NCBI GenBank assembly: GCA_964199315.1
Contig: OZ116699.1
Location: forward strand, 29,450,001 to 29,514,000
DNA from: Orbicella franksi
Lineage: Eukaryota
Direction of reading: 5' to 3'
DNA: 64,000 nucleotides
Of this stretch, positions 33,501 through 64,000 are shown one piece after another. Both the position numbers and the translations under genes were made by a program. Positions within the stretch are counted from its first letter, which is position 1. Each line of letters opens with the position of its first letter. The notes under the pieces were generated by a model. That model saw nothing but the letters and a program-made list of their open reading frames with translations, made no database searches and was not told the origin of the DNA.

Positions 33501-36500
33501 ATTAGAAAAGAGTTTTTTGGAGATCCTGTAGTTTTTGTTGTAAATAATTTCGTCAGTTTCACTGGTGATAAGATTTCCCTACTTTTTTGACTCTCCACTT
33601 TCAAAGAATGACTGCAGTCTGTCTTAGTTTTGTGAAAGATACAAGATTAATACAGAAAGGGGGATGCAAAACCTGTCTGCAACTTTCTTGCCGTTTAGTT
33701 TAAATCATTTTTATGCAAAGAAAACAAGACGTTTTCTGGGTCTAGCTGGGTCAGCTAGTACAAACCAGTTACATTAAGCGAATTAAAATCTTCTTGTTTG
33801 CCGTACAATAAACATCTCGTTAACCGAGCCTAGTCTGTCTGTATGGGAGAATCTTGACCTCGGTCGTGAGTACAGACCGAACGTAGTGGGGTCTGTACAC
33901 ACGACCTCGGTCAAGATTCTCCCATACAGACCTCCTGCTCGCTTAATAAGAGCTAAGTATAGTAGCCATACTTCTTAGAAATGAGTATTCAGAGTTAATG
34001 TCATTACCTCGTCTAGCTGGTCTTCTGTATCGTAACCGTCTTCCTCTGAACCACTTCCCACGCCAACGAACGTATCCAAGTCTTCCTTTCCTCTTCACAA
34101 GAACTCTTCGACCCTTGTACTTTGCAAACCATGTAAATCGACGCCTTATGGGCCGGAACCTTTTACCTAGCCGCACCCAGAATTGTTTCCCAATACGCTT
34201 CAGGGCCCTATAACCTTTGCGAAAACGGATCTGGAAAGTTCTTTGGTTTCGATGGAGTGGTCTCAAACGCTTCTTGTAACGTAGATACCAACGTCGACCT
34301 TTACGATGAATTCGATGCCACCTTCGTCCCACGTATACTTTCCAAACGCTTCCACGGTTTTGCAGTCGTCGCCATTTGCGCAAGAACTTAATTCTCATAC
34401 GTCTTCCTATCTTTCGAAGCAGTATAAAACGTTTGGCAACTCTTACACGATATATGGGTCTTCCTCGTCTGAGCTTCCGGTATTTCCTCTTGAACAGCAC
34501 CCTAGGCCGCCTTAGTCCTTATAAAAAAAGAAAGTGTTAAATTGAGAATTAATGATAATAATACCGTGTAACTGGACAAGACGACCAATCACGCATCAAA
34601 CAAACAAGTTTTCTCAGAACTGAACAGAAGCTCACAGTGCTAAAATTCCAGTAAGATTTATTTATCATCAGGTAAGTCTCGAAGTAATTGATTCCTTTGT
34701 AAGATTTTTTAACGGTCAGAACAATAAAGTAATTACTGGCAATATCGAGCATGAAACAATCACTTACTTCGTCTTCTTTCGTAGGATCTGTTTCGTACTG
34801 CAAAGAGAGAAGGACAGCGTACTTAGTAACGCTAAAACCCAACTTTGGTTGATGGATTGATGGATTGATTGATTGATTGATTGACTCATTGATTAATTAA
34901 TTGACTGACTGATCGATTTGNNNNNNNNNNNNNNNNNNNNNNNNNNNNNNNNNNNNNNNNNNNNNNNNNNNNNNNNNNNNNNNNNNNNNNNNNNNNNNNN
35001 NNNNNNNNNNNNNNNNNNNNNNNNNNNNNNNNNNNNNNNNNNNNNNNNNNNNNNNATTCATTGATTATTGATTATAGTCTTCTGTTTTCCATTTTTACTG
35101 TGTGATTTTAATGTAATTTTTACCCTTTTTACTTGCTTTATATTGTGAAGCGCATTTGAACATTACTTTATGGAATTTGCGCTATATAAATATATTGTAT
35201 TATTTATTATAGACTGACTGTCATTGGAAAACTGCGCTAAACTACCGAGTTCAGCACTGCACAGTCAGTTCATTCTCTCAATTTAGAAGCTGGAAGTGGT
35301 TTACTTTATCACTCTTTTATTTGAGCAAGCTAATATTGCCTGCTTATCAATTGAAGGGAAAGCACACGACCAGTTGATTTTTTAAGGTTTTAAATGAACT
35401 AAAACATGACACCTTCACGATCATGCAAACAAGGAGCTCCCGGTTTTTTTCTTAAACCAATGCATAGAAACATGAATTGGTTGCTAACGTCAGAGCGCCC
35501 TCATTAAAATTTTTTACAATAACTGTCTAATTTCTCGCGCGCTGATTGGCCCATTTTTATCGTCAATAAGAGTACAGACGGATAAAAGTTTAGTTTATGC
35601 AAGCTTTTAAGTTCAACTTTCAGCTGTCAAACTGTCAACTTTTTTACCAATGAAATTTTATGAACGTTTTTAAGTAACCAATCAAAAAGCGAGAAAAGCT
35701 ACTGACAATGTTCGCGTCATTTTGAATCAAATTCACTTATCTTTGTTTACGGCAAGTTTAGGGCGTCTTTTCCCCTCATTTATTCCCGGCTTTTGACCAT
35801 TTTGGGGTCTTGTTATTGTAAAAAACAAATTGACGTCCGCTTTTTATGCGTCTGTCCTCTTATTGATGATAAATTTCACCATAACATCGTCAAAGTTTAC
35901 TGCGGAACCATTTTGGCAATGTTATTGACGCAATTTACAATCAATAAGAGGACGGACACATAAAAAACGTCCATTTGTTAAACTTACGCCTGAGTCGTCT
36001 TCGTTTTCTGTAGCGTATCCTTCGTTTGGACAATAATCCTTTGAAACGGAACTTGAAGAACCTTCTTCTTCCACGTCTTACTCGCCGTACTTTGATACTC
36101 TTTCCACGGTACTTGAAGAAACGCAAATGCCTAAATGTGAACCTCACACCACGGCCTTTGAACTTGATGTAAAATCTTCGCCCGCGTCGTGTAACTTTCC
36201 TGTAGCGACGCCTGACACGTATCATAAACTTCCGCGTGGTTACCCAGCGTTTTCCAAAACGTAGCATCCACCCTCTTCCGCGCTGGATAACGCGGCATGT
36301 TCTTCTTCCAATGCGTACAAACCACCGTCGTCCGCGGCGTCTGGGGCGATACCATCGCCTTCGGAAGTACAGCTTCACTCTTGATGTTAATCGGCCGATA
36401 CGGAACTTACGGCGTCCAAATGTGAAACGTATAATACGACGACCGCGTCTTATACGGCGGATTCGCTTTTTGAATCGGATCTTTCCCCTTCGGTAACCTG

Positions 36501-39500: not shown

Positions 39501-42500
39501 GACTAAACTGTAAATTGTAAATTCTTCCTTCATCTCTCCTGTCCTTCAATTAGACAAAACTAAGCTGGAGGTTAACTCGAAAACCTAACGGTTAATTTAG
39601 CCTCCAGTCTCGTTAAAACAAGATTACAATCGTCACCTTATCTGCAACATGTTACATATAATAAAGATACCACAAATGTTTAATAATTATTCATATTTGT
39701 ATTCGTATCTTGTGCTAAAGATCATGATGTGTTTGATTCGCTGCCACTACAACTATACTTTACTCTGCGAATAGGAAGCTTAACACGACGTTCATTGATT
39801 TAAGAGTTTTCCGTTAATATGAAACCGCACTCTGTGCGAGTGCTTTCTTTACGAACGTTTTCACTCACGAGGGCAACAGCCAGGTAAGTTTATAGGGCCA
39901 AAGGAGAATGCTTACTTACGAAATGAGGTCAGCTCAACCGGGATTGGGTTGGGACGCGAACATGGCCGCCGCTTCGTTGTCTTGAGACACCGATGCGGCT
40001 GTCGTGACGTCATGTGAAAACAGGCTATAGTTGTTCTGGACTATTTATACTATCATTCAAAATGTCAAAAGCAGCCTGTTCGTCTCCCAAGAAAATAACC
40101 CGGAAATAAAATTTTCTCTCACGGTCAAAAATTTATAGAGTTTGCTTTTGCGTCTATCCTAATCTGTTTTGAAATATTTATTTGTAGAGATATTCGTCGT
40201 CCTATATTATGAGTCGGACAAGTACGTTATATTTTTAATTGAGGTGTTAGTGCGGCTTTGAGCTCTTGGGGCAAACATATGTTAAAATATAATTTAATAA
40301 AAAAAACATGCACTAACAACAACAGAGGCATGCAAAAACAAAATAAAATTACTTATGAATAACGCTGAATTCGAAATTATTAACTAGAAGCGCGCAAAGC
40401 GATGTGCAGCGTTTCTATTATTTTCTTAGTTCTGTCAAATTACCTTTCCCTACATCGGGTCCAACAACAACGAAAAATAATCATATTTGAATCAACTCAC
40501 GTCTGAAACGGATCCTCCTCGCTTTACCATAACGGCCTTTCCTGAATATTCGCACACGACGTCTGCCAACAAGCTTCACTCTAACTCGTCTACGTCGGAC
40601 GCGTATGCTGCAACGAACCCGGCGCCTGACGCGCATCCATCGCTTCTTTCGCCTTAGGTACCATACCTTTCTGCGTCGTCTGATTCGTATTCTTTTTCCT
40701 CCCACTTTGCAAATCAATCTGACACGTTTTACTTTCCTCCACTTTCGTCTTCTTTTCAGATACCACTTTCGACCGAATCTTCGAAGTCCGCACCATTTTC
40801 TTCTGATACGGACTCGCCATCGCCTCCCAAAGCGTTTTATTTTCCTGTATTTTCGCTTGATTAAAATCCTTAACCTTCGCCTGAACCTGCGGATAGGTTT
40901 CCTCTTTAGGCCGAAGAAGTATTTCCTTCTTATTTTCACACGGCGTCGTCTACCACGATATCGGATATACCTCGTACCTAGATAGACCAAGGATCATTTG
41001 AAACGATTAGTTTCTGGAGAAACTGTTGTTACCGTTCATAACCAGGTGAAACACATACTTAAGATTTATAAGAGTACATAACTGTTCGTATAAATTTGAA
41101 ATTCCGGGAACAAGCTAAGATCTTGTGTTTATACTTCAATCCCAAGAAATCTAAGAAAATTTCATTGTAGAATTGAGCATGGATTTGTTATTGTTGGAAA
41201 GTGCACAATCTTATCGTTAGCCAATATTTCTAGTTCTAACTAAGAAGAAGAGAAGAAGCACCTTCCTAAAACGTAATGGGATGAAGAAATGTTACGATAT
41301 TTGAATGAAATAGTCAGTCACTCGCTATACTTACGTCGCCTACGTCGTCTTCGATACCTTCGACCTGAACAGAAAAGACAGAGAAAAGAAAACATAAAGG
41401 CAAAGTTCTTTCAAACTTGCCTTTCCGAACTGAACCCCCACTTCTAGAATGTATACAGTTACACAAAATGATAAAACGTATTAATTTAATATCATGTACA
41501 GCGAAACCCCACGTTACAACAAGCACGTTAATACGAGCTAGTCGATAATACTGCAACTGTTTTCCTGTCTCTTACAAAGTGATACTCTACTCTAAATCAC
41601 TCGAGGAAAACAGTTAGTTTTGTTTTCCCAGCCGAATCTCGATGTTTACCGGGACGAAGTCGAGAGAAACTTTGAGATTCAAGGTAAAACAAAACTAATT
41701 TCCTCCGGACCAGTAATGAAGTGTCCTGTTATTACGCTAGAGGTTAGTGTAAAGTACGAAAGCAAAAAGAATAACCTCCAAGTCAGAGTAACCCTTGTTA
41801 AAAACGTTAAATGTTGAATGTCTATGGTGGTCGACGCGCTTAGCTATTTCAAATAAGCATAAAAGGCTTAAAAATCGCAACTGGCGGGAGGCAGACCAGT
41901 TAGCTATTTACAAGTATGACCGAGTAGTTGAACTAGGGTCTACCGAGAAACAACTCCAACTAAGTGGTCAGAGCGGGACTTGAACCTGCGACCTCCGGAT
42001 TTCAAGTCCGGCGCCCTAACCGCTCGGCCACGCGGGAGAGCTAGCGACAGTTGCTTACTCTCCCGCCGGGCAACCTCTCAATAAGACGCGCGTTTGATTC
42101 AACTAAACTTCAGCTATAATTTATAACAAATTAATTTCTGTACTCGAATCGCGGCTTTTCAACAGGACCATCAGGTTAATTGCCATCAATCTTCCAAAGC
42201 CCCAATTTTTAGGTACATTTAATACGACCGTTCGAAATTCCTCATCAGGTAATTAACAAAAGCAAATACTGTTGTGTTTATCGCCCTGAGAACAGCAGTC
42301 GATGGAAAGTTGGTGTCAAGACATCAATTAAAGGGATTTTTACAGGTGTCATAATTTGTACACCGTTGTTACCCCGTTAATACGACCACATGTTTATACC
42401 CTTTGTTTTTCGTCAGTCTGTTAAATTAACTCCACTCACGTCTGAAACGGATCCTCCTTGCTTTACCATAACGGCCTTTCCTGAATATTCGCACACGACG

Positions 42501-43423
42501 TCTGCCAACAAGCTTCACTCTAACTCGTCTACGTCGGACGCGTATGCTGCAACGAACCCGGCGCCTGACGCGCATCCATCGCTTCTTTCGCCTTAGGTAC
42601 CATACCTTTCTGCGCCGTCTGATTCGTATTCTTTTTCCTCCCACTTTGCAAATCAATCTGACACGTTTTACTTTCCTCCACTTTCGTCTTCTTTTCAGAT
42701 ACCACTTTCGACCGAATCTTCGAAGTCCGCACCATTTTCTTCTGATACGGACTCGCCATCGCCTCCCAAAGCGTTTTATTTTCCTGTATTTTCGCCTGAT
42801 TAAAATCCTTAACCTTCGCCTGAACCTACGGATAGGTTTCCTCTTTAGGCCGAAGAAGTATTTCCTTCTTATTTTTACAAGGCGTCGTCTACCACGGTAT
42901 CGGATATATCTCCTACCTGGATTAACCAAGAAAGCACTTTTTAATAACAATCATTCAAAATATTTAAATAGGAAAACAGCGACAATAAGAAGGTAGCAGC
43001 ATTCGCTGGATATGTTGTCTTATTTCAGTAAGTGAAAGGTAAGTTTCTAAATAAACAGATGTGCTGTGTCATCAGGCAGGTAAAATGCTGAATTAACAAA
43101 GCCTAAGTCAAATTCAACGGCAATCGGAATCTGATCACGAGGTCTTGTGTTTAAGGAAATTCAAAGAAAATATTATTTCAATTAACTTAAATCCAAATGA
43201 GGATAGGACAACTGTTGGTAAGAGAACATTTACAGTACAGTAAAATCCCGTGTGCGAGAACCTGCATGCTTTGAAGTCTGGCGAAATATAGGTTCTTGTA
43301 TTTTGCGGTAGTTATTGGAAATTTAGGATAAGTAGTTCTTAATTAGGTTCTTAATTAATTTATATGAAGGAGATATAGTTACGCATTGATTACCAGAATA
43401 ATGCTATACATGAACAATTACTC

Positions 43424-52400: not shown

Positions 52401-55400
52401 TGCTGAGAACGAATCAAATTTCAAGGATAACCAGTGATTTTAAAATGGATATAATAAAAGATGTAATCAAACTGGGACTGTGAAAATAAATTTTATCATC
52501 AGAAATCAACAGCTAAAAGTGGTGAAAACAAACTTACCCTCGTCTGATGCGGTAAATAAATCTCTTGAACCTCTTTGCCTGATAACGGCTGCCATGTGTG
52601 TCAAAAGACCTCCTTTGTACAACACGCCCTATTGCAGTAAAAACATCAGCAATAAGATTTAAAGAAAAACACGACAGGACAGTCTATATCATCATTGATA
52701 TAATCTAGACCATTGATAATTAGCTTGCGAATTCAAGAGGCTAGAATCGAAAACCACAGCATAAGGGTGACACCACACATCTAAGTACAAAGATACAAAT
52801 AGTTTTTGAGGTCATGCTACTCTTGGTACATTGAGGGCTCACCAGTGTTGCGGTCGATAACACAAACGTCAAAACCACGCTTGGGCAGAGAATCTCTTTC
52901 GAAGCGTACCAAAAAGGTAGGAATAGCTTTATTAACTATAAGTCCTTACCCGTCCGGCGGTTGATAACGATAGAATTAAAACCACGCCTACGCAGAGAAT
53001 AATCTCTTCTGAAGCGTACTAGAAACGTAGGAATAGCTTTAACAACTATAAGTCCTTACCTGTCCTGCGCTTGATAACGATAACGTTAAAACCACGCCTG
53101 TGTAGAGAATAATCTCTTCCGTTGACTCTGATGTAGGCCCGCGAGCGTCCATACAAAGTACGTCCGCGCTTCTTATCAACAAAACCTTGACTTTCCACTC
53201 TCACTCTTACATATCCTGTACATAATAACAAAAAGAAGCACGTTTATGCGGAAGTCGAAACTCGAAGATATTCTGATCTCTCAACTTTCCAAATGTATTT
53301 TAAGAGAAACTTGGTATAAAGAGGAAACTTACTTAAATATGACAGTGGCTTCCCTCGAAATATCTGATTACTAACTTATTCCCGACAGCCGAGTATTTGG
53401 TGAAAAAAAATGTTGTAAAAAAATGTTAGCAATTTTAACAGTCTTAGACGGCGACTTACCATAATTATAAATGTCACTCTGTCACTTTTTTCATTTTTAT
53501 CCATCGAAGGCTGTAGTCTGACAGCCGAAAGCTCGAAAGTTTTAACTTTATTTAGCCAATGAATTTTAATGTAAACCGAAACCGTTGAAAAGAGTACAAA
53601 ATTTAGGATCGAAACTAACCAATCAACAAATGGCAAAGTTTCCTGAGAGGTCTGCGAAAGTACACGCTTTCGTGTTTTTTTTTTCTTTCTTTTGTTCTGT
53701 TATAGAGCGATTGTTTTTATTCTTTAATGCTACAGCGATCTTTAAAGAAAGATCGCTATCCTTGTACTCAAGTAACGTTCTGATTGGTTTTCTCTTTACC
53801 AAGCGGCCCGTTTGAGTAGTTGCACTGCAATACCCGATGATAAGCTGCCTATAGACAGGGTCAAAATGATATTGTTTTGATTTGAAGTTTTGAAGAAGAG
53901 CATAACGTCTGCGCAGTTTCGCGGTCATCATAGGTAGCAAAACCAATAGAAACAATTCTTTTTTTTTTATGCTATTGAATGTCATTATTTGAATTTTTCA
54001 AAACAATGCGTCCATGTTTAAATAACTATCGTTCCTCTACACTTGAGAATTAATTTTTTGCTATGGGGATATTGGAAAAATGTAATTGACACCATTTTCC
54101 AATCAGTGTCTCTGATTACACTTACAGTACTAAATAGGACGATTTGTAATACTGAAAGATTCCATATTTAGGGAAACATCTTTATCGTTGTTTTGCTTTA
54201 TGAGTATCTTACCCACTCAAAGTAGGAGTTTTAGAAATCAGTTTGTGCCTCATGAAAACTCTACTTTTTGCTTACGAAATCATAAGTTCCAATCGTTCAA
54301 AGCTCTTATTCGCCTTACTAATCGCGATACATATCTTTTAATGTCAGTTGTAAGAATTTGTTCTAACATGGAGACAATATCTCGTTATTCCTGTCATCAA
54401 TCGGCATAACATTTACTGATATTGCAAGGAGAATATGGATGTTTCTCATTCAAGATATTTGGAGGTGTTTGGGGATCATGGTAGTAAGTACATACCTCTT
54501 CGCCGTCGCATTCCCCATCGCCTTCGACGTCTTCCTCGCCAGCGTCGTCTTCCACCTCTTCTACGTCGTCGTCGTCGTCGTCGTCTTCGTCGTCTTCTTC
54601 TGCGTCGTCGTCTCCTTGCTCGTCTTCTTCTCCTTCTTCGTATTCGTCTTCTACGCCTTCTCGCTGCAAAATAAATGCCCAGGTCTGTTACGACCTTTTT
54701 AGAAGTCGTAACAGCGATTATGCTCACAACTTTCAGGGTAAATGAAATCATATTAAACCTGAGAATTGGAACTAAGTTAGAATTGTCCCACACTCAACTG
54801 GCTGAGGGATCTACATTGTAGCTCAACGCACTAGTCGAAGAAAAAGTATGAATCCGGCATCATGAGCGCGAAAACGCATCCAAGCAAAATCACACTTTAA
54901 TTTGGTTTCACTGGATCCTAACTGATTTGAAGACAATTATTTGGTAATTGATTGGCTTAGGGGACAGTGTCTCTTCCTAATTTCCATATTATTGCCAATC
55001 ACCACAACATATACAAATAAATCGGATATAAAGATTCTGCCAAGCCAATGAAAATTGCCATTCTGTTGAAATTTCACATTTTTCAATTTATTATTAGGAA
55101 TATTAAATGTAGAAATGACAGAAAATTGTAGAAAACTCGGCAATAAAATCCGAGTTCCATCCAGATGGGATTCGAACCCACGACCCTCCGTGATCTAGCC
55201 GGACGCTCTAACCACTGAGCTACTGGAGACTCTATGGTGAGCAAGGGTGAAATGTGGGTCTTTGACTGGAACCGCATCGCGCAGTCACACAGCCAAAGAA
55301 TGACAGGTATTTACCAAGGGTCTTTTTTTTCTTTTTAGTTGATATTTTTTTGCCTTCATTATTCTTTCATTTCGAAGATAATGAAGTAACTTTATAGCAA

Positions 55401-58400
55401 GCTGCCAGCCAAACTTATTAAATTACGATTTCTGTAAGCCTGTTTCACGGATATTTTTAGACGATTGTAAGGCTACGCAAACGCTAAACCATACAAACAG
55501 AGGACGGTTGCTTTTGGAACTCAACCAACTCAGCCCTTCAAGTGATGTTATTTTAACTGTTCACTTACACATTCGACGCGGTCTTCTCGTTTTTATTTTC
55601 CTTCTGCGAGTCCAGTGGCCATGGTATCTTACCCGGACCGTCCTTCGCCTTCTCCTTACTCGCAGGAAACGACCGTGATATCTTATGCGATATTTTCGGC
55701 GACGAATAACCGGCTTCCACTTGCGCCCTAGCATCATGTACAGCCGTCTCTTCATCATCATCATACGCGCCCAGACTCGTCTGAACTTAATCATCAACAG
55801 ATTCGCCTTGACTCGCAGACGTTGCAACCGTCGTCGATATTTTAAATACCAGCGACCTCTACGCTTCACAATAGGTTTCCATTTGCTTCCAAACCGGATG
55901 AACCAACTTCCGCGTTGTTTTTTAGCTCGACGCCATCGTTTCATGTAGTATATTTTCACATGTCGCCCGTTTCTGTTTAGTTTGTATCTCTTTCTGTGAA
56001 TCGTCAGGTACCATGTTCTCCCTCCTTTTCTCAAGCGTCGGTAACGTCCTTTGAAATAGACTCTTTTGCTAGCTGATTGAGTGAAAGACAAGTGATATCA
56101 AGTAAGACAACGATACTGCCGCTAGTACCGTCAGCTGCTAAATCCTCTACTGCTTTATCGCAATTTCGGAAATTAAATAATCAGTCTGACTTAGCAGGCT
56201 CCCAGTACAATTGCTGCAGTATTTTAGCAGCGTTAAGGGACGTATGCACAAAATATCAACATAATATTTATTATACCTAGATAAATTAGACGTAGTAGAT
56301 ATCATTATAACATATTCTCACTTTTGATGTATTATTTTTAAGCCTTTTGTATTTTTTAAATTTGTTTGTGTTGACTAATTTTATCATGAGCGTTTGGCTC
56401 GAATGAATAGGCAACTACCCCGTGTCACGACTTTAAATAAATTATTACTATTACTACTGGGTGAGTCTATTAATTCCCATGTACATATCTTAGTCAAACA
56501 TTGGCTAAACCTCGAATGCTCTTGTTACAAGAGTTTATATTATTCAGCATTAACTGCTCTGGAATCTTAAAATAATGGGTTGAGAAGATAAATCATTTTA
56601 ATTGTGACAATTAACACAATTGCGTCAAAAAATAATTGGGCCATTAGTATTGTTTGAAAAAGCCTTTGCTTCACTTAATGATTGACTTTCGGTTTAAAGG
56701 TACTTTATCCTGCCCCTGTTCATAATGTATAGCTCACAATAAATACTATTGTTTGCTCTGTTTGCTGAGAAGGGCTTTGACAAGGAATCAACAAACTCTC
56801 TAATTCTTCGGGTTGACTTTAGCTATGTGGCTGGCCACATCGCCGCTTTAATAATCATTTCAATCCAGTGTCAATTATAAACGAATGAAGGAAGCCCTAC
56901 TCAACAAAGTTGAGGGTAAAAATCCTCATCTCATAGACAAAGGTATATGTGGCTAGGATAAGGGTGGGGGGGGGGGGGGATGGGGAAAACAAAGTAGGAG
57001 ACGATCCCTCTATGCGGTCAAGTCCAAAACCACATGGCATGGATACACCGCCTAGAGGGTTCCCAGAATGTTCCAATATGTTGCAAACCCTATCCCCCAC
57101 CCACCCCTAGCCAACATAGCTGGTTAAGTTTAAACATTAACAGAGGGCAGCATAATTTTCATTAATGTTCATTGTCTGGACAATAAATAATTTAACCAAC
57201 ACTCTAAATTCAAGTGATTGGTTCAGTTCTTCGTCATGGCAAAAGATCATCGGCTCCTCAAATATCATGAACTGGTCGTTTAAATTTGATAACAAAAGAA
57301 AATAAGGAAATTATCACCACAGGGAATTACAAAAACACTTACGTCTTCGTCGACGAAGTATTCTCCTTCGTCTTCTTCTTCGTCGCCTCACTCGACGAGC
57401 TGAAGAGGTTTATTTTTGACAAAAACATATATATGAGAAAGTGAAATATTAAAATGACGGGAGCAATGAATGCCAGGGTTTCCATCTCAGTAACATTGTC
57501 ATTATGAGATATCAAGTAAATTAAAGAACTCATAATACCAAAACTAGACATTATTGAGTTTGCCGAAAAAATACAACAAAAAGCGACCCCCAGTATGAAA
57601 GCTTATAATTTTAAAAGAGGAAAACTTCTTTGAATAAACCTGTGGTTCTGTTTTAAAGAAAAATAAAAAGTACTGTTAGTCGACGTTTCGATGCATCAAA
57701 CTCAACTCAACAACTTTGACTTCAGCATTAACGACCTCAATCTTGAGAATGATGCTTGATGCATCGAAACCTCGATTGTCATTGCTTTTAAACTTTCTTG
57801 TCAAATGCTTTAACAAGCAACTCATCATTCATTGTGTTTTTAGACATGGAAATGCGAGGACCCGCTCACAACCAGCACTACTGTTTTTCGGCTTTTAACG
57901 TTACGGCCGTATTTGGTTAGGTCAGGGTTTAAAATATTTCTTTTGAAATGAAGTATTCGTATCTGTTTTTGCATATAACCTTTTTACAAAACAGATGTTT
58001 CGGTTGCAAAACTATTGTTAGGCATACTAGTATCTTGATGGTCCAGTTGGATACCTTCATCTTTTTCAAAAGAAGGGGGATAAACCTTCAATATATTAGA
58101 AAACGAACTCTTAAAGCAGAATACCTCTGTAAAAGCGAATGCTGTAATTGTTTTCAGTATTATTTCATGTCTAGCTAAACGCTGTCGCTTTCTCTTGAAT
58201 TACGTGACATTTTTAGGCCTTTTTACAGTACGTAACATTTAAATAAAATACGTACGTCTCCGTCTTCGTCTTCTTCTACGTCGCCGTCGTCCTCTTCNNN
58301 NNNNNNNNNNNNNNNNNNNNNNNNNNNNNNNNNNNNNNNNNNNNNNNNNNNNNNNNNNNNNNNNNNNNNNNNNNNNNNNNNNNNNNNNNNNNNNNNNNNN

Positions 58401-61400
58401 NNNNNNNNNNNNNNNNNNNNNNNNNNNNNNNNNNNNNNNNNNNNNNNNNNNNNNNNNNNNNNNNNNNNNNNNNNNNNNNNNNNNNNNNNNNNNNCTTCTC
58501 ACTCGCCGCCTCTTCCTTCTCGTTCTTCTCCTCCTCGCTGTGATAAAAATGACACCAAAGTGACATTTCATAACATAAGCCGCGCAAATTTTCGGGAACT
58601 TACACCTGGTGAGAACACTGAGGATGCTGGCGGCAATTTATTTTTCAGACGGAATCTTTGTGTAACTTTGGTGATTTCACCAAAAAGAGATAAGGGAAAT
58701 GTACTTTGTACTTTTTTTTCAAACAAGAAGAAAACGTAGAGGTAACAACAGACCACTGGCAATCAAAAAAGCGAATTCACAGCCGTAAACCAGATCAGAT
58801 TGTCCTTTTTTTAGGAAATGACGGCAAGGTTTTGTATGTTGACATCCTTTCAGAAAACACCCTATAAGAAAGCGAATGCTCAATCCTGTACTTCTATTAA
58901 ACAATTAGATTATGAGCTCGAGATTTACGAGGGTGCAGACTATAGCACTATTCTGAAACTTTCATTACATCTTATATGTGGATATCAGTGTGATAAAGCC
59001 GTGACTTAAAAGTCAAATGAACCAAAATTTAGACATCTTATCTTCAGCCATTTTGTAGCGAAATGTTTAAAAAAAAAACATGTAAAAAGGAGCTTATGCG
59101 GAAATTTTTTCTTTCTGAAACGTGAAAAGGAGTAAAAAAGTTAAAAGTACGAAGACAGCGGATGGCTTCACGAAAACGTTTCCAAAATGACCGCGCACTT
59201 TAATGGAAGGAATGGAACTGAGACTCTGCTTTGTGACGTCACTGTTGTCTTGAACATTGCTGCGTTTCTGCGTCAGTGAGTCTTTCGTGGGGAAGGTTTT
59301 GGATCTAAATACAAGCCTTATTTTACTCTAGAAATGGCCGAGGCTTTCGCCCGCTTTCGGCAGGCATTATTCGCTTGTTTTTTGTTGCCGGCTTGCAACG
59401 TTTCATAGTGAAGTTAAAAATCGTCGGTACCGCGTCTTTCTTGACTACAAGTTGACGAAGCTTGAAAGAGGGTCCCAACAAACTCCTTACTACAAGATTT
59501 TGCTCAAAGCTGTCTTTGGTAAAGTGTTTTACACAAACGTGCGCATGTTTCGAGGGCACGAAGCATTCTCTTTTCATTTTGATAAGCCATTAATTATCTC
59601 TTAAGTTTTGGGTCCTGGGGGAACTTGAAAGTGTTAACTTTTGATTTTGAGTGGTTTTCCTCTGAAGTTCACTGTGAACTTCAAACCAAAACAGTTTCAA
59701 ATTTCCCGCATTTCTTGAGCTCACCAATAGTGACGTCACAAGTTTTATTTCCAACAATTATCCGACAATTTTCCCGAGCACTCTACGATTATGAAGAATA
59801 AAAAACAATGATTTTAACATTCCAATATCTCCGCAATGCTTCGTCCAATTCGTTTGAAACTTCAGAATATGTTTATTTCATACTCAATGAACACATTGAA
59901 TTCAAATGAAAAAAAAAATGTCTAAGTTTTGGTTCATTTGACCTTTAAAATGATACCTGTGAAGTGATATGATATCATTTCACTGCAGCGAAATGATATC
60001 ATACCACTTCGCGGTTGAATTGTCCAATCAAATAGACTGTAATAAACTGGTTGGACCAATCAGGTAGCAAGTTATATTTTAGCTGGCGCCAAATTTGGCG
60101 GGAAGAATTTCTCTGCAGTTTTATCCGCGAAATGGCCGCTTCAAGATTTGTGAGCGTTTCCTGTGAAGATATATCTCAGTTTCTCGAAGAGAACGAAAAC
60201 AAGAACACGGCAAGAAAAACCTCTCAAGATGTAGCGTTCTTCAAGACCTTTTGACCGAATGAGAACGCAAATTTACAGGACCATTGTAAGAGAAAGATAC
60301 GCTTCAGCTTGCCCTCTTTCTTGTATGTATTCACTGATATTAAAGGCAACTTTCTTGTACTTTAACTTGGTGGCTTGATATTTTTTAAGCATGTAATATG
60401 CTTACTCGCTCGAAGACTCGCTCGTTCGCGATATGGTATTACAAACGCGTGAACAAAAACGATACCAGGCTCTTAATATGTATTGTTACATGGCTTAAGT
60501 TTGTAACCGATATAACGCGCTCTCCGATTGGCTAGTTCTAGGGCATTATTCCCCCGTAATGCCCACGGGCCGATTACGGGCCTGCAAAACCAAAGCAAAA
60601 CGCCATATAATAAACAACTTATTAACCTCGAACGTTTGGTATTTGCGGGAAAATCTCAAACCTCGCCCTTGCAGTATTAATCTCGCTATTGCTCGGTCAA
60701 TTCGGCAAGGTCTCGATTTGAAACTTTGCTGTAAAGACCTCAATCTCGGATAATAAGGAGTTAAAAATCTATATTTATCTTACCTCTTTTGGGTCTACCG
60801 TATCGACCTCGATATCGCACTCTGAAACGTCTACCTTTCCTCTTTACCACCAATCGCTTACTGCGGTATCGGATGGTATACCGGGGACGTCGTTTCACGC
60901 GCAACCAGCGTCGTTTAAAGTAGATAGAGTATCTTCGTCCAATACACTTAAACGGTCGCCACTTCCCTCGGAAACGGATTCTGAAAGTGCGCGAAGTCCT
61001 AGGCAGGCGGATGTAACGTTTGTTTCTGCGTATCGTCCACTGCCGTCCGCGGCGATAGATACGTTGCCATGTTCCAATGTAGACATACCAGATGTTTCGG
61101 ATACGTTTCAGGGGTCTAAATCTTCCACCATACTTGATCCTCATTCTTCTTCCACCTCGGCGGATTCTGTATCTTATTCCTTTCACTTTAATAACAAATC
61201 GACTCCTCCAACGTCTTAAAACACGTACGCGTCCCTTGAAACGGATTCCTCTTCGTCTCCAGCCTAACAAAAACAACCACGAGTAGATGAAATGATGATT
61301 GTGCAATGGCAAAACATTCGCGTTCCATATTCTTCAACGAGACCATATTATCATCGACATTACTTTCCAGATCTACACTGTCACTTGTTGCTTCGTTTTT

Positions 61401-64000
61401 GTTTCATAATCTGAGAAAAACGACGGTGGGAATAAATTGTCGCATTATATTTCCACGATATAATGCCGGTCCGAAACTTTTGTCAATTGGCTTCAAATGA
61501 ATCTAATTTGAATGGAAAAAGTGATAACAGCCAATCTTGCACAAGCTTATAAGTTTAGGTGTTACTCACACGACTTTGCTCCATGTACAAAACATTTTTA
61601 AGGACAGAAGGGAACACGAAAACTTTTTGTGCTCCGTTAATTTAAGGGTCCCTTAACATTCGATTCCAAGAACACCTCTTTACTCCATGTATGATACAAG
61701 GTCAAGCGGTTTCAAGACCTTTCCTAAAATCCTCATGCATCAATCACAAAAGCTCTATCTGCTCTCCACTTCACACACTGTTTGATTGACGGTTCTCAGT
61801 TTGAGACAGGAAGGGCCTCGCCCCTATGTTCATCATCATCATCATCATTAGTCCTTATTGCCCCCAGTGTGGCATGTTAGGTTGTATTTTGATGGAATGG
61901 AAAGAACACTACTTTTCACACACGACCTCTTGTAAAGTTACCTCTTGTGCGCCTGGTTTTTCTCTTTCTTCTTCTTCGCCTTCGTCTCCTGCGTCGCCGT
62001 CTTCTACGTGTCCTTCTTCGCCTTCTTCGTCGATTGCGACGTCTTCGACGTCGTCGTCGTCTTCTTCGTCGCCTTCTCCTTTTCATACGCTTATACCAAC
62101 GCGGTCTTCTTCGAGTGCCTAAAAGCACAAATCGTTTTAGGTAATCAAGTCCATACAACGAGAAGATGAATTACTCACTAACAAGCCAGATAAAAAACTT
62201 CTTTTTGTCGCGGTAAACGCATTAAGGTAAGTTGCCTTAATGTATTCCCTGTCCCTACTTTTCCTATGGCAATATATCTTTGTAATGAACGACACTGTAT
62301 TTATACCTAATGGTACCTTTCTGGCACGCTTCGGTGGCATATTGGGCGAGTTTGGTCGAGCCATGACGAGATCACTCGAGCCTAATATGCCGCCGAAGCG
62401 AATCAATAAGGTACGATTAGGTATCTACCGTACCCATGATATCATGGCCATATCAGGTCAGTGACTTGATATCGCAGGTTATCAGGACAGTAGACACGGC
62501 TTCTGACTGGCTAACTGCAAATTTGGGTACGGTGAAACACAAGATCAACCCTCCATCGTTGTTGTTTTCAACGGAAGACGAAAGTATCAGCTCTATGGAA
62601 ACTGTTGGGCAGAGTCAGCGGACAAGTGAAACAGTTAGCTACTTATCAACTTGAAGTTAATTAAGGTCAATTAACCTCCGGTGAGAGTTTGTGAAACTGA
62701 CGTCTTCTCCAGCCCTTTAATTGATTTTATTCCTCTGTCCCACTAGCCTTTGACTATAAACACTGACCAAGGGTAAATCAAACATTATTTTTTAGCTTAT
62801 GGCATTATTTCCTAGTCAGGACGAGGAGGACGACTGAGCGAGTTCTTGGCTCTGACGCCCAAAACGTCAGCTCCGTAAACTCGCTATGGCGGCTAAATTT
62901 GAAAGCGGAAGCGTCACCGATTGTGTTTCACGATGCGCTTTACTCAAGCGGGCTTGTAGCACTTTCAAGGCAACCAAATGAGAGTTTGGAGGAGGACAAA
63001 ATCATAGGACATATTACTTTCCAGCAAAGGGCTAGAACATTTTGTTAATGCGTGACTACATGTTTAAACTACCACTCACGTCTTCTACGCCTTCTTTTAA
63101 CTCTCCTGACTCTCTTCCATCTCTTGTTTACTCTTATCCGATATCCTCTTCCCCTTCTTCCTCTTCTCACGCGGTATTTTCGTCGACCCACTCTTATGTA
63201 GCGCCTTCTGCGCTTCGTGATTCGTCTCCATTTCCTTCCTATTCGCATGCGCCAACGCCTTCCACGACACCTCACAACTCGTGTGACGCCTTTGAAACGG
63301 AATCGGAGTCTCCACCTCAGTCGCACCCATCGTCTTCTCCAACGAATATAGCGCCGTCCGCGGCGACGTACAACTCGAACAGGTTTTCGTCCTATCTTTA
63401 CATACCATTGTCTACGCCTTCGATAAATGGGTCTATATCGCTTGAACAGTTTGATCCTAAACCTGCGGCGTTTGAATCGGGGGATTGTTATTCGCTTTCT
63501 CTTGTATCGGATCGTATATCGTCGGCGAGATATTACACGACGGTAACGGCGGCGGAAGCGTAACTTAACAACTCGTTTTCCTGCAAAATATTTCAATAAT
63601 ATTTAACAATAACGCAAGCATTCAGTTTCCATACCAATTTATCTGCCAATTGGGTTAAGAAAAACTGGTGGTGGACAAGGGTGTCTTGCAATAGCTGGGT
63701 TACAGCTATATAGCGATGTCTCTTATCTAGTAGTGCGTTTACAACTCAACCTCATACAGGGAATTCTTAAATCCTTACGAGCTGTACGGTCTGAGTGTAT
63801 TTTGACATAAGCTTGAAATAAAAATTCATCTTCTTCCTTTCACTAAACCATTTCATACTCACGTCTTCTTCGTTGCTTCCTTTTTCGTCTTCTAATAATC
63901 CTTCTTCGTCGCCTTCGTCGCCTTCTCCTTCGTCGCCTCCTGCGTCTACGAAGTCGTCTCCTTCTTCTTCGCCGTCTACGGATCCTGGATCGCCGGCCAC
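85..64000 (-). CDS. Giant multi-exon arginine-rich (polycationic) modular protein gene with an internal ILEI/GG-lectin domain; 49 exons in window, truncated at both window edges
   Basis: Every Arg-rich ORF is bounded by pyrimidine-tract AG acceptors and GT donors. Phases match at all 48 internal junctions and each junction codon is a sense codon. Summed exon length is about 17,960 nt. No start codon, signal peptide or true stop was seen in the window. Confidence 0.92.
1016..1456 (-). CDS. E48 phase-2 repeat exon
   Basis: 441 nt, ATCAG|A ... AG|GTATGA. Confidence 0.88.
1838..2317 (-). CDS. E47 phase-2 repeat exon with PKPKPKPRP insert
   Basis: 480 nt, TGCAG|A ... CG|GTGAGA. Confidence 0.9.
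3317..3871 (-). CDS. E46 phase-2 repeat exon
   Basis: 555 nt, TTTCAAG|A ... AG|GTATAT. Confidence 0.85.
4571..4878 (-). mobile_element. tRNA-derived SINE, family A
   Basis: tRNA-like head with A/B boxes (GGTGGCCTCTCGGTTAG...GGTTCGAACC) and a TTGGGCAAGACACTTAACTCTCACAGTGCC core; homologous to 22542-22822. Confidence 0.8.
5245..5800. mobile_element. PIF/Harbinger-like non-autonomous element with MADF remnant
   Basis: Imperfect TIRs GGCCCGTTTACACAGGCGAT / ATCGCCTGTGTAATTAGGGC; + strand 5507-5626 reads QEELLVELWRKCPCLHQTNSNGYKKSDKSAAAMVEI (MADF-like). Confidence 0.6.
5968..6567 (-). CDS. E45 phase-2 repeat exon
   Basis: 600 nt, TGCAG|G ... AG|GTAAAT. Confidence 0.9.
7499..8065 (-). CDS. E44 phase-2 repeat exon
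   Basis: 567 nt, CCCCTATAAG|A ... AG|GTAAGG. Confidence 0.87.
8456..9043 (-). CDS. E43 phase-2 repeat exon
   Basis: 588 nt, ACCAG|G ... AG|GTTTGG (weak donor; an in-phase AT|GTGATA lies 9 nt further on). Confidence 0.82.
9312..9851 (-). CDS. E42 phase-2 repeat exon
   Basis: 540 nt, TTTAG|A ... AG|GTATGA. Confidence 0.88.
11292..11465. mobile_element. Palindromic MITE
   Basis: Imperfect IR arms ATATCGAGTTATGGATGCAC..TTTGGAGAGCA / TGCTCTCCAAAC..GTGCATACATAACACGATAT. Confidence 0.6.
11490..11625. mobile_element. Palindromic MITE end
   Basis: 23-bp perfect IR GGTCTGTATAGGAGAATCTTGAC (11509-11531) / 11583-11605; homolog at 33819-33958. Confidence 0.75.
11630..11900. mobile_element. MITE-like repeat with perfect internal hairpin
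   Basis: CCCGAGCGGGCAAGAT-GGCGCT-ATCTTGCCCGCTCGGG (16-bp stem). Confidence 0.55.
11976..12494 (-). CDS. E41 phase-2 repeat exon
   Basis: 519 nt, ACCAG|A ... AG|GTAAGA. Confidence 0.9.
13791..14267 (-). CDS. E40 phase-2 repeat exon
   Basis: 477 nt, CACAG|G ... AG|GTACTT. Confidence 0.87.
14910..15398 (-). CDS. E39 phase-2 repeat exon
   Basis: 489 nt, ACCAG|A ... AG|GTACGC. Confidence 0.88.
15993..16445 (-). CDS. E38 phase-2 repeat exon
   Basis: 453 nt, AACAG|A ... CG|GTAAGC. Confidence 0.9.
16679..16864. mobile_element. MITE with imperfect TIRs
   Basis: AACCATTTCCGAGTT ... AACTCAGAAGTGGTCTATT termini. Confidence 0.55.
17619..18113 (-). CDS. E37 phase-2 repeat exon
   Basis: 495 nt, ATCAG|G ... 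AG|GTAAAT. Confidence 0.88.
18609..19121 (-). CDS. E36 phase-2 repeat exon
   Basis: 513 nt, ACTAG|T ... AG|GTGAGA. Confidence 0.9.
19619..20170 (-). CDS. E35 phase-2 repeat exon
   Basis: 552 nt, TTCAG|G ... TA|GTAAGT; TA + T of E36 gives Tyr rather than a stop. Confidence 0.9.
20881..21372 (-). CDS. E34 phase-2 repeat exon
   Basis: 492 nt, TGTAG|A ... AG|GTAAGA. Confidence 0.9.
22542..22822 (-). mobile_element. tRNA-derived SINE, family A (internally deleted)
   Basis: Homologous to 4571-4878; (TTTACC)n tail; a 3' fragment of the same family lies near 10547-10595. Confidence 0.8.
24041..24499 (-). CDS. E33 phase-2 repeat exon
   Basis: 459 nt, TTTTCCAG|G ... AG|GTAATG (a weaker in-phase AG also exists at 24473). 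Confidence 0.87.
26018..26461 (-). CDS. E32 phase-2 repeat exon
   Basis: 444 nt, TCCAG|A ... AG|GTAAGA. Confidence 0.9.
26511..26770 (-). repeat. Dispersed repeat with internal tRNA-like segment, family C
   Basis: Homologous to 29944-30155 beyond the tRNA-like part. Confidence 0.72.
27017..27514 (-). CDS. E31 phase-2 repeat exon
   Basis: 498 nt, TTCTTAAAAG|G ... AG|GTAGGA. Confidence 0.87.
28792..29268 (-). CDS. E30 phase-2 repeat exon
   Basis: 477 nt, GTTAG|A ... AG|GTACGT. Confidence 0.88.
29944..30155 (-). repeat. Dispersed repeat with internal tRNA-like segment, family C
   Basis: GATAGCTCAGTTGGTAGAGC...GGTTCGAATCCC on the minus strand; flanks shared with 26511-26770. Confidence 0.72.
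31081..31590 (-). CDS. E29 phase-2 repeat exon
   Basis: 510 nt, ACTAG|G ... AG|GTAATA. Confidence 0.9.
31921..32394 (-). CDS. E28 half-module + poly-Arg + half-module exon
   Basis: 474 nt, TTTAG|A ... CG|GTAAGA, phase 2-2. Confidence 0.9.
33050..33305 (-). CDS. E27 phase-switch exon (poly-Arg + first half-module)
   Basis: 256 nt, AACAG|GA (phase 1) ... AG|GTGAGT (phase 2). Confidence 0.85.
33745..33958. mobile_element. Palindromic MITE end, same family as 11490-11625
   Basis: TCTGTATGGGAGAATCTTGACC / GGTCAAGATTCTCCCATACAGA IR; upstream GTCAGCTAGTACAAACCAGTTACATTAA shared with about 10992-11020. Confidence 0.72.
34008..34517 (-). CDS. E26 R/aromatic module exon
   Basis: 510 nt, ATAAG|GA ... 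G|GTAATG, phase 1-1. Confidence 0.88.
34850..35055. other. (TTGA)n-like microsatellite running into a 135-N assembly gap
   Basis: TGATTGATTGATTG... up to 34920; N at 34921-35055. Confidence 0.85.
35988..36497 (-). CDS. E25 R/aromatic module exon
   Basis: 510 nt, GGCAG|GT ... C|GTAAGT, phase 1-1. Confidence 0.9.
36922..36960 (-). CDS. E24 39-nt poly-Arg microexon
   Basis: TACAG|GC ... C|GTGAGT; RRRRRRKRRRRR. Confidence 0.82.
38661..38865 (+). mobile_element. tRNA-derived SINE, family B
   Basis: GCCGAGTGGTTAAGGCGCCGGACTTGAAATCCGG...GGTTTAAGTCCC head followed by a body shared with 41860-42033. Confidence 0.78.
39139..39171 (-). CDS. E23 33-nt microexon
   Basis: CTTAG|GG CTT TAT GGA AGA CGA GGA AGA AGG GCA AGG C|GTAAGT. 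Confidence 0.72.
40501..40977 (-). CDS. E22 R/aromatic module exon (near-identical to E20)
   Basis: 477 nt, TCTAG|GT ... C|GTGAGT. Confidence 0.9.
41335..41364 (-). CDS. E21 30-nt microexon
   Basis: TTCAG|GT CGA AGG TAT CGA AGA CGA CGT AGG CGA C|GTAAGT. Confidence 0.8.
41860..42033 (-). mobile_element. tRNA-derived SINE, family B
   Basis: Reverse-complement homolog of 38661-38865. Confidence 0.78.
42440..42916 (-). CDS. E20 R/aromatic module exon (near-identical to E22)
   Basis: 477 nt, TCCAG|GT ... C|GTGAGT. Confidence 0.9.
44029..44055 (-). CDS. E19 27-nt microexon
   Basis: CTCAG|GT CGA AGG CGT GGC AGA CGA GGA AAA C|GTAAGT. Confidence 0.78.
44313..44483. mobile_element. MITE with 45-bp perfect terminal inverted repeats
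   Basis: AGACCATATTCGTATTCTCGGTATTGGACTGGAACTAGCTTGCAA and its exact reverse complement. Confidence 0.85.
44526..44615 (-). CDS. E18 poly-Arg exon (28 consecutive Arg then Trp)
   Basis: 90 nt, TGTAG|GT ... C|GTAAGT. Confidence 0.85.
45041..45553 (-). CDS. E17 R/aromatic module exon
   Basis: 513 nt, CCTAG|GA ... G|GTGAGG, phase 1-1. Confidence 0.9.
45916..46029 (-). CDS. E16 poly-Arg linker exon
   Basis: 114 nt, TATAG|GA ... A|GTATGC, phase 1-1 (the internal AG at 46008 would be out of phase). Confidence 0.78.
46130..46935. repeat. 117-bp minisatellite, about 7 units, with a 328-bp higher-order duplication
   Basis: GTTCTAA(G/A)AA recurs at 46155, 46272, 46389, 46506, 46600, 46717, 46834 (one unit shortened to 94 bp). 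Confidence 0.9.
46963..47004 (-). CDS. E15 Arg-rich microexon
   Basis: 42 nt, CGTAG|TT ... G|GTAAGT; RLRRRRRRYRGRR. Confidence 0.8.
47656..48138 (-). CDS. E14 R/aromatic module exon
   Basis: 483 nt, GGCAG|GT ... G|GTACGA; its C-terminal part is clearly homologous to E12 (WRPxxCxIRRxVxYKxKRxWLKRRRGKW). Confidence 0.9.
48649..48696 (-). CDS. E13 Arg-rich microexon
   Basis: 48 nt, TTCAG|GT ... C|GTAAGT; RYRRKGRRRRRKFPR. Confidence 0.82.
48730..49070. repeat. Dispersed repeat, family D
   Basis: Shares GGCGAGTTT(A/G)GTCGAGCCATG, AAGGTACGATTAG and GATATCGCAGG..AGTAGACACGGCTTCTGACTGGCT with 62290-62600. Confidence 0.65.
49121..49594 (-). CDS. E12 R/aromatic module exon
   Basis: 474 nt, TGCAG|GT ... 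C|GTAAGT, phase 1-1. Confidence 0.9.
50377..50606 (-). CDS. E11 ILEI domain, part 3
   Basis: 230 nt, TGTAG|G ... G|GTGAGG (phase 2 in, phase 1 out); CIVVLAIQDEA...LSFRSSLAAIGYVG...GPS resembles the ILEI V-L-x-A-x-x-DEA and FR-x-S-x-A-x-IG motifs. Confidence 0.87.
51030..52085 (-). pseudogene. Degenerate Crypton/DUF3504-type tyrosine recombinase relic (intron between E10 and E11)
   Basis: Frameshifted fragments LAKFYAEV, ERQLKDQSYPVSI..LRQQGKGKGPN..LTPEEE..GQLG, TKTRSG, MGQNTI, FSNHSMRKTLV..SG..ICEIT resemble this family's motifs; ends approximate. Confidence 0.75.
52538..52628 (-). CDS. E10 ILEI domain, part 2
   Basis: 91 nt, AATAG|GG ... GG|GTAAGT (phase 1 in, phase 2 out); RVVQRRSFDTHGSRYQAKRFKRFIYRIRRG contains the FDT motif. 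Confidence 0.85.
52843..53110 (-). repeat. Three tandem copies (107-110 bp spacing) of the E9 3' end plus donor site
   Basis: Donors at 53060 (RGFNVIVIKRRTG|GTAAGG), 52950 (RGFNSIVINRRTG|GTAAGG) and 52843 (RGFDVCVIDRNTG|GTGAGC). Confidence 0.8.
53060..53215 (-). CDS. E9 ILEI/PANDER (GG-type lectin) domain, part 1
   Basis: 156 nt, TACAG|GA ... G|GTAAGG; YVRVRVESQGF...AYIRVNGRDYSLHRRGFNVIVIKRRTG resembles the ILEI N-terminal S-G-F...I-x-V-N-G...RGFNVVV-x-x-x-x-TG pattern. Confidence 0.85.
54496..54663 (-). CDS. E8 poly-Arg linker exon
   Basis: 168 nt, TGCAG|CG ... G|GTATGT, phase 1-1. Confidence 0.87.
55155..55297 (-). repeat. tRNA-like SINE-type repeat
   Basis: GTAGCTCAGTGGTTAGAGCG...GGTTCGAATCCC A/B boxes on the minus strand; single copy in window. 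Confidence 0.55.
55569..56072 (-). CDS. E7 R/aromatic module exon
   Basis: 504 nt, ATCAG|CT ... T|GTAAGT, phase 1-1. Confidence 0.9.
57343..57399 (-). CDS. E6 poly-Arg microexon
   Basis: 57 nt, TTCAG|CT ... C|GTAAGT; RRVRRRRRRRRRILRRRR. Confidence 0.82.
58256..58537 (-). CDS. E5 poly-Arg linker exon containing an assembly gap
   Basis: CACAG|CG ... C|GTACGT; Arg codons on both sides of 197 N (58298-58494); true length unknown. Confidence 0.75.
59010..59944 (-). mobile_element. Non-autonomous Kolobok-like DNA transposon with degenerate THAP domain
   Basis: TTAA on both sides (59006-59009, 59945-59948); about 27-bp TIRs AAGTCAAATGAACCAAAATTTAGACAT / ATGTCTAAGTTTTGGTTCATTTGACCT; RR...YY termini; internal FKFPQDP...WLIKMKRE...VCVKHF...DAVPTIF = THAP remnant. 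Confidence 0.75.
60784..61263 (-). CDS. E4 R/aromatic module exon
   Basis: 480 nt, GTTAG|GC ... G|GTAAGA, phase 1-1; WRRRGIRFKGRVRV...RGRYGRPKR. Confidence 0.9.
61942..62118 (-). CDS. E3 poly-Arg linker exon
   Basis: 177 nt, TTTAG|GC ... G|GTAACT, phase 1-1. Confidence 0.85.
62290..62600. repeat. Dispersed repeat, family D
   Basis: Homologous to 48730-49070. Confidence 0.65.
63080..63580 (-). CDS. E2 R/aromatic module exon
   Basis: 501 nt, GCAG|GA ... C|GTGAGT, phase 1-1; KRVVKLRFRRRYRRV...RWKRVRRVKRRRR. Confidence 0.9.
63863..64000 (-). CDS. E1 poly-Arg linker exon (5' end at or beyond window edge)
   Basis: Reads GRRSRIRRRRRRRRLRR...KQRRR; donor C|GTGAGT, phase 1. Confidence 0.85.

Follow-up and report, generated by a model that had tools for sequence, protein, structure and literature searches.

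Several described groups of proteins resemble the element analysed here. The choline-binding repeats of CW_binding_1 (PF01473) are tandem β-hairpins of ~20 residues with conserved aromatic and Gly positions, and bind a charged ligand at many sites. Cationic hairpin antimicrobial peptides (tachyplesin, polyphemusin, protegrin and arenicin) are hairpins of 17–21 residues rich in Arg and in aromatic or aliphatic residues. Protamines and other sperm nuclear basic proteins combine extreme Arg content with an absence of acidic residues and probably act by condensing polyanions, while the mussel foot and sandcastle-worm cement proteins are secreted, repetitive sequences of marine invertebrates, cationic and aromatic, that rely on cation-π contacts and complex coacervation. 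Engineered supercharged proteins such as +36 GFP have a folded, β-rich domain under an all-Arg/Lys surface, and indicate that high charge can coexist with folding. Ten exons whose products share some of these features lie on the minus strand of a stretch of 64,000 nucleotides (nt) from the coral Orbicella franksi (contig OZ116699.1, positions 29,450,001 to 29,514,000; hereafter the window). Each encodes one module of ~160 residues composed of nine hairpin units. The explanation that we favour, and which could as easily fail as stand, is that the modules are folded polycationic beads of a giant, probably secreted polycation that binds polyanions.

The module differs from every one of these systems. 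CW_binding_1 repeats are bacterial, not Arg-rich, and form open superhelices of variable length, whereas the coral domain is fixed at nine units in one exon; the choline-binding proteins 2bib and 2v05 reached only E 0.3–0.6 and a template modelling (TM) score of 0.11 in a Foldseek comparison with the predicted coral structure. The antimicrobial hairpins, though each is the size of one coral unit, are free peptides closed by one or two disulfides, whereas the coral units are position-specific, nine to a domain and without paired Cys in any unit (a module of ~160 residues has 0–3 Cys in all). Protamines are small and largely disordered with clustered Arg, whereas the coral modules belong to a giant gene, have Arg runs of no more than 5, include 36% non-basic patterned residues in a strict hydrophobic/aromatic register and have a confident all-β prediction. 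The marine cement proteins are rich in Lys, Gly and Tyr (as dihydroxyphenylalanine), disordered and without sequence relation to the Arg-dominated coral modules, which are predicted to be folded; by analogy, the coral protein may still work as these polycations do, or as protamines or supercharged proteins do. Engineered supercharged proteins carry ~+0.15 per residue compared with +0.43 to +0.54 in the natural coral domain. In every comparison with a foreign family that gave a result, the distinguishing feature was missing from the coral module: neither a profile match nor a structural match was obtained, and the modules have no disulfide pairs and no internal clusters of Arg.

Module exons and repeat register

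The ten module exons are 474–513 nt long and extend from 34008 to 63580, with the lengths and outer limits given in the original prediction, which was made from the letters of the window. In the direction of transcription they are E2 (63080–63580, 501 nt, net charge +90, profile E 6.6e-28), E4 (60784–61263, 480 nt, +69, E 9.3e-37), E7 (55569–56072, 504 nt, +71, E 2.0e-36), E12 (49121–49594, 474 nt, +81), E14 (47656–48138, 483 nt, +74), E17 (45041–45553, 513 nt, +76), E20 (42440–42916, 477 nt, +86), E22 (40501–40977, 477 nt, +86), E25 (35988–36497, 510 nt, +81) and E26 (34008–34517, 510 nt, +74, E 7.6e-39), which is the last of the nine-hairpin modules. The other six exons match the profile as well, and E22 is a near-copy of E20. 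The open frames, among them that of E2 with its nine 18-residue units, are bounded by AG and GT in intron phase 1 at all ten exons.

RNA contigs from two runs, X10 (polyA) and X1, were aligned to 44900–50890. Six splice joints were found in both runs, each reading CT..AC on the plus strand and hence GT..AG on the minus strand, and in X10 the depth was 264–331 in exon bins compared with 0–6 in intron bins. GT..AG splicing is seen for three of the ten module exons: E12 has spliced joints in X10 and X1, the boundaries of E14 are confirmed, and E17 has an acceptor joint and a contig end at 45039. Joints also define three linker exons on the minus strand, namely an Arg-rich micro-exon of 48 nt between two modules (48649–48696, both joints present), a second Arg-rich micro-exon of 42 nt (46963–47004), and a poly-Arg exon of 114 nt (45916–46029). 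In the RNA-supported order, the first two modules are separated by an Arg linker of 16 residues, and the second and third by a linker of 14 residues followed by 38 residues of poly-Arg. All five of the exons completely bounded by RNA joints in this region have lengths that are multiples of 3, and the six RNA-supported exons joined together give 558 codons without a stop. The same stretch of the locus is present wholly or partly in 20 of 24 listed runs, which come from 14 studies and are labelled as coral metagenome or as coded coral species; 14 are on record as RNA. Minus-strand stop-to-stop frames with >25% Arg occur every ~1–3 kb across the window, and the whole 64 kb is one minus-strand gene.

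This gene continues for ~32 kb past the end of the window. All 19 full modules of the genome are found in it, at C2:29484021-29545629 (window position 34021 to +95629, where the plus sign marks positions beyond the window counted from its start), with profile E of 5e-21 to 8e-39 and open frames of 170–217 codons each. Nine of these module exons are upstream of the window in the same orientation, from +64622 to +95674 (L001, L005, L002 and L006), and near-identical exon copies occur at +69408, +76099, +85525 and +87134. A second tandem gene begins ~108 kb from the window start, where 3′-type exons and an acidic terminal exon are seen from +108124 to +113380 (L003).

The modules in the window are 157–170 residues long and consist of 37% Arg, 11% Lys, 7% Gly, 15% aromatic residues and 0.7% Cys. 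Neither Asp nor Glu occurs in the 1,633 residues of the ten modules, and the net charge is +69 to +90 per module, or 0.43–0.54 per residue. The longest Arg run in each module is 3–5 residues, in agreement with the earlier view that these exons lack long poly-Arg. A repeated Arg/aromatic motif had also been described, with a period of 15–17 residues; the analysis confirms the repeat but puts its period at 18. In autocorrelations scored against 300 within-module shuffles, lag 18 has a z of 12.4 for hydrophobic residues, 9.0 for aromatic residues and 4.4 for Gly; hydrophobic residues also recur at lag 36 (z = 8.2) and Gly at lag 9 (z = 5.1), and Trp recurs at lags 8, 10, 18 and 26. The 18-residue unit has two unequal halves, a 6-residue strand with a 2-residue turn followed by an 8-residue strand with a 2-residue turn, and nine such units with G, R or K as the turn residues make up each exon.

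All ten modules can be aligned over ~165 columns with very few gaps at 28–39% identity. W, Y, F and G columns are held in common, as had been noticed from the sequence, and the motif WRPxxCxIRRxVxYKxKRxWLKRRRGKW is present in both E12 and E14. Units compared across modules are more alike at the same position than at different positions (mean scores of 0.30 and 0.23, with the diagonal highest in most rows), so the nine-unit array predates the module duplications and behaves as a domain. Rather than an open-ended repeat, the array is a defined domain of nine hairpins in one exon. In a wider alignment of 59 sequences, the short strands are ~90% hydrophobic at alternate columns with Arg or Lys between them, and Asp and Glu together account for 0.4%. 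That the exons are coding and encode a nine-unit domain with a period of 18 is almost certain.

Conservation of the modules and predicted fold

Conservation was examined within the locus and against related loci. Where Arg occupies a column in at least eight of the ten modules, it is encoded by a mean of 4.1 different codons; AGR and CGN codons occur together in 12 of 13 such columns. The orthologue of E14 in another data set (L013) is 88% identical without an indel, with a ratio of nonsynonymous to synonymous substitution (dN/dS) of 0.47, and the paralogues E20 and E22 give a dN/dS of 0.16. The diversity of Arg codons and the dN/dS values together indicate that conservation acts on the protein rather than on a DNA repeat. 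A syntenic locus of a divergent species, on a 2.1-Mb contig of a different assembly (L010), has the exons in the same order, with an E17-type exon, poly-Arg, an E20/22-type exon, an E25-type exon, an E26-type exon and the transition exon described below. Its orthologous exons are 38–56% identical to those of the window in 2–4 alignment blocks, with synonymous divergence (dS) of 1.3–2.1 and dN/dS of 0.23–0.50.

Hydrophobic positions are retained in these orthologues at 49/62, 49/58, 49/60 and 51/61 (~80%); the E25 orthologue, which is 38% identical, accounts for the 49/60. Their net charge is +46 to +70 compared with +74 to +81 here, and across the family the charge ranges from +0.27 to +0.56 per residue. 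To judge from these sequences, it is the hydrophobic register that stays constant, whereas the charge varies and has been driven upwards, which is what would be expected of a folded domain with a resurfaced exterior.

E20 and E22 are 98% identical, with 9 differences in 474 nt and a dS of 0.05, and their flanking introns are unrelated (~35% identity) right up to the splice sites. The divergent species has a single exon of this type (L010:3891-4430). This arrangement points to gene conversion confined to the exon, or to a recent duplication of the exon accompanied by replacement of the introns.

One alternative is that the Arg frames arise incidentally from a purine-rich DNA repeat carried by a spliced non-coding RNA, or that the locus is a decaying pseudogene. 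The biased composition of the DNA fits this, as does the presence of long Ser/Pro-rich or Leu/Arg-rich open reading frames (ORFs) in other frames and on the opposite strand. However, 19 of 19 modules are open throughout, the exons are phase-symmetric, dN/dS is below 0.5 with diverse Arg codons, the exons are conserved where the introns are not, and splice signals are confined to the minus strand. A non-coding origin has already been largely refuted by these features and is scarcely credible.

The module at 45042–45551 (E17) was folded with AlphaFold2 using the 59-sequence alignment (A2). The mean predicted local distance difference test (pLDDT) score was 90.0 with a predicted TM (pTM) score of 0.73, and the five models were at 87–90. 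The single-sequence control for the same module gave a pLDDT of 44.5 and a pTM of 0.23, so the confidence derives from the family alignment and not from the simple pattern. Assignment of secondary structure with DSSP shows an all-β model with alternating 6- and 8-residue strands and 2-residue turns, interrupted by two longer loops and by two long strands where a turn is absent. A β-hairpin or β-solenoid fold had been proposed originally. The hairpins are supported by the predicted model and by the conservation, but a β-solenoid consists of parallel stacked coils with β-arcs usually of at least 3 residues, and the 2-residue turns make an antiparallel hairpin meander more likely. The module is predicted to be a compact all-β domain in which alternate I, L, V, F, Y or W residues would be buried, with Arg and Lys outside. 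We consider it fairly probable that the module really does fold, at least in the presence of a counter-ion or of salt at marine strength.

Searches for relatives returned no assignable family, as the original prediction had anticipated. Eight modules scanned against Pfam matched no family even at E 1, and the A2 profile searched against all PDB sequences found only the basic RNase P protein 1ts9 at E 0.028, which is too weak and was treated as an effect of composition. The profile search of protein databases that had been proposed was made with HMMER against 1.84 billion representative proteins, and gave 71 matches at E ≤ 1e-3 (55 at ≤ 1e-10) with no described family among them. Seventy of the 71 are nameless exon-sized open frames of 134–312 residues from ENA or Logan contigs. 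The only long match, a bacterial protein of 2,943 residues (P0063, E 7e-7), was set aside as a periodicity artefact, because the matched stretch is a perfect tandem repeat of 9 residues, (FARKDTLVN)n.

Structural searches with the predicted module, also part of the original proposal, likewise revealed no known relative. Foldseek found nothing below E 0.1 in the PDB (TM ≤ 0.19 and root mean square deviation ≥ 14 Å). Among the AlphaFold models of Swiss-Prot there was nothing below E 0.07, and matches in the ESM Atlas were limited to TM ≤ 0.36, with no relative. VIA-align against 48,161 chains gave a best Z of 4.8 to the WWE domain of TRIP12 over 53 aligned residues, under the chance level of 7–8. 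WWE, FABP-like and lipocalin-like up-and-down β-structures were the best-scoring shapes yet are not relatives, and these, NanoLuc and porin-like matches were all rejected as under the stated noise levels of the tools. The best match among the AlphaFold DB clusters is an uncharacterised protein of 889 residues, A0A3M6UD74 (E 1.6e-5, 21% identity), and the remainder are noise. A search of a protein language-model atlas gave no usable match and a low recognition score, and keyword searches of the literature on arginine-rich or polycationic coral or cnidarian proteins yielded no description of such a protein. The modules represent a domain family not described before, probably with a new fold. This unnamed family is defined by a length of ~160 residues encoded in a single phase-1 exon, by nine units of 18 residues, by conservation of the hydrophobic register and by at least 27% net positive charge; it is represented by ten copies in the window, 19 in the locus (E ≤ 5e-21), 70 related representative clusters elsewhere and the syntenic locus of the divergent species.

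The modules could instead be a disordered or conditionally ordered polycation, a giant protamine or coacervate former with hairpins that are transient or form only on a polyanion. A net charge of +69 to +90 in ~160 residues with no acidic residue is in keeping with this, and so are the low single-sequence confidence of AlphaFold2, the want of a structural analogue in any library and the low language-model recognition score. It is harder to reconcile with a hydrophobic register that is ~80% conserved through saturated dS with almost no indels, with the retained position-specific identity of the nine units, or with the alignment-dependent confidence of the model; moreover, the less charged homologues (+0.27 per residue) look like ordinary β sequence. 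A purely electrostatic polymer would not need such conserved features, and we regard disorder as unlikely, though as an explanation to be taken seriously.

Proposed role of the bead array

If the modules are folded beads, the 5′ half of the giant gene would supply 19 of them, with poly-Arg exons and short Arg-rich linkers between them and ILEI/FAM3-type domains interspersed, and ~23 exons with six-hairpin blocks and long poly-Arg would follow. The protein would enter the secretory pathway and act outside the cell as a multivalent polycationic scaffold, binding and condensing polyanions, for example sulfated glycans, acid-rich matrix proteins or poly-gamma-glutamate. In this scaffold the hairpin domains would serve as rigid, protease-resistant guanidinium arrays, with charge repulsion offset by high ionic strength or by the bound polyanion. 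A bead charged at +70 to +90 could hardly avoid binding polyanions to some degree, and we infer a secreted, polyanion-binding scaffold at a little short of an even chance.

The putative ILEI/FAM3-type domain is the feature that points to secretion. An exon at 50377–50607 on the minus strand, spliced directly to E12 (RNA joint 49595/50376), predicts the C-terminal half of such a domain (PF15711 positions 41–89, E 0.023). The preceding part of the profile (positions 12–41, E 0.021) is matched by an open frame at 52537–52683, also on the minus strand and collinear with the exon. ILEI/FAM3-type domains are known from secreted or lumenal proteins, and the sequence match can be taken as a consistent, if weak, indication that the protein is secretory or extracellular. 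Further ILEI-like frames occur upstream of the window at +80149, +82538 and +89169.

Several points weigh against a folded, secreted and intact scaffold. The two ILEI pieces score 15.8 and 15.7 bits, each under the Pfam cut-off of 27, which their sum would exceed. The N-terminus, and hence a signal peptide, was not found in the ~12 kb that separate the first module (+95.6 kb) from the 3′ end of the upstream paralogue; a scan of this region for Met, a hydrophobic stretch and a phase-1 donor gave two weak candidates, with ATG at ~+96768 and ~+103514, neither of which is decisive without RNA. Boundaries of seven of the ten module exons are predicted by analogy with the RNA-supported exons. The fold is itself a prediction, in which the modelled domain would have to carry 0.43–0.54 charges per residue without counter-charge, a density far above that of any folded protein known to us; AlphaFold2 does not model electrostatics, and the alignment behind the model consists of 59 sequences only, many of them paralogues from one gene. 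Finally, each module has 2–16 RX[KR]R motifs, and the protein might be cut in the secretory pathway rather than persist as an intact scaffold.

These motifs, together with the poly-Arg linkers between modules, are also the basis for regarding the product as a polyprotein precursor in which proprotein convertases cut the poly-Arg and linkers, and perhaps the modules, to release cationic β products of antimicrobial or toxin-like function. The 18-residue Arg/aromatic hairpins match the cationic hairpin antimicrobial peptides in size and composition. However, the units cannot stand in for one another: every one of the nine positions has a conserved sequence of its own, and the module is conserved as a whole. 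Paired Cys are missing from the units and there is no spacer or propeptide architecture. A precursor of this kind is improbable, and release of whole modules is in any case compatible with the folded-bead explanation.

We give an equally low weight to an intracellular protein without a signal peptide that binds nucleic acid in the nucleus, nucleolus or sperm chromatin as a giant protamine-like condenser of DNA or RNA. The poly-Arg tracts and extreme basicity would suit that function, and the sole, weak sequence match in the PDB, 1ts9, is a basic RNA-binding β-barrel protein. No reads came from X23 and X24, two raw-read polyA runs carrying the label of the same species; this does not count as a test, but might reflect expression limited to certain stages or tissues. 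Against this explanation stand the ILEI/FAM3-type domains, known from secreted or lumenal proteins, the expression in many colony-level metatranscriptomes from 14 studies, and a giant size unlike that of any known sperm nuclear basic protein.

Returning to the secreted scaffold, a fuller version would make the module a new fold and the most highly charged natural folded domain (~+80 in 160 residues). It would be the cationic counterpart, in stony corals, of acid-rich matrix proteins or sulfated glycans, and would drive a coacervation-type assembly of extracellular material, for instance the organic matrix of the skeleton, an adhesive or the matrix of cnidocysts. Taken as a whole this combination is rather unlikely. 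Polyanions figure in discussions of coral calcification, of adhesion and of cnidocyst function, and a dedicated polycation would, if the scaffold exists, be their missing partner. If the predicted structure is correct, the module would provide a natural test of how far a folded domain can be charged, with about half of its residues cationic and none acidic, and a new all-β architecture built from a tiny alphabet (R, K, G and hydrophobic residues) that is relevant to protein physics and design. For coral biology, the locus points to a class of giant polycations seemingly missed by annotation pipelines, as no named protein was found. Trypsin-based proteomics would miss them too, the fragments being too short to identify, yet the exons are covered at high contig depth by polyA RNA of colonies. 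The novelty lies in the protein family and the predicted fold; the role is one that we infer.

The 3′ series, assembly gaps and other frames

Downstream of E26, a transition exon at 33050–33305 on the minus strand encodes poly-Arg followed by two hairpin units, and enters in phase 1 and leaves in phase 2; its counterpart is L010:20075-20404. It is followed by the 3′ series, ~23 phase-2 exons at 84–32394 on the minus strand, recognised from the ORF list and phase-2 splice sites. Each of these encodes four hairpin units, a poly-Arg tract of 40–70 residues and two further hairpin units, and in E27–E49 six-unit blocks of 100–120 residues span the phase-2 introns. Splicing eight of the exons in silico yields an uninterrupted frame of 1,203 codons, with a period of 18 (z = 7.8). 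The nine-unit profile detected no significant domain in the spliced 3′ exons (best 12 bits, with huge bias). The original prediction had grouped the intron-spanning modules of E27–E49 with the ten exons; they do share the 18-residue unit and its motif, but the six-unit blocks are a different module. Across 1–33305, poly-Arg tracts of up to ~30 consecutive Arg occur dozens of times in one frame. Polybasic tracts normally stall eukaryotic ribosomes.

Two assembly gaps are present in the window, and neither touches a module exon. The first (34921–35055) is within the intron between E25 and E26, where the flanking sequence is AT-rich and (TCAA)n-like and none of the three minus frames is open. The second (58298–58494) interrupts a poly-Arg exon at 58239–58571 on the minus strand, which has Arg coding on both flanks and phase-1 ends, with acceptor CAG/CG and donor C/GTACGT.

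Long Ser/Pro-rich and Leu/Arg-rich frames are found on the plus strand opposite exons (8422–8883, 28938–29315, 63042–63563 and others), and Glu/Asp-rich frames in shifted minus frames of poly-Arg exons, for example at 61912–62082. These are by-products of the Arg-codon composition; every splice signal is on the minus strand.

The depth of RNA contigs is very high at 50100–50299 (417 in X10 and 108 in X1), which is nominally intron just downstream of the ILEI-type exon. It has no joint to the gene, loose contig ends are seen at 50120 and 50150, and the signal may come from a repeat element that is expressed or from an exon missing from the annotation. A tandem repeat of 117 nt in ~7 copies (46139–46940, 84–96% matches, also scored with periods of 211 and 328 nt) fills most of the intron between the poly-Arg exon at 45916–46029 and the micro-exon at 46963–47004. 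In an intron of the ILEI region, an open frame of 130 codons on the minus strand (51694–52083) is of ordinary composition and looks like a fragment of a transposon-derived protein. A further minus-strand frame of 88 codons (59326–59589) has a C..C....VC.KHF-type motif reminiscent of a THAP zinc finger, and is probably an intronic transposon remnant.

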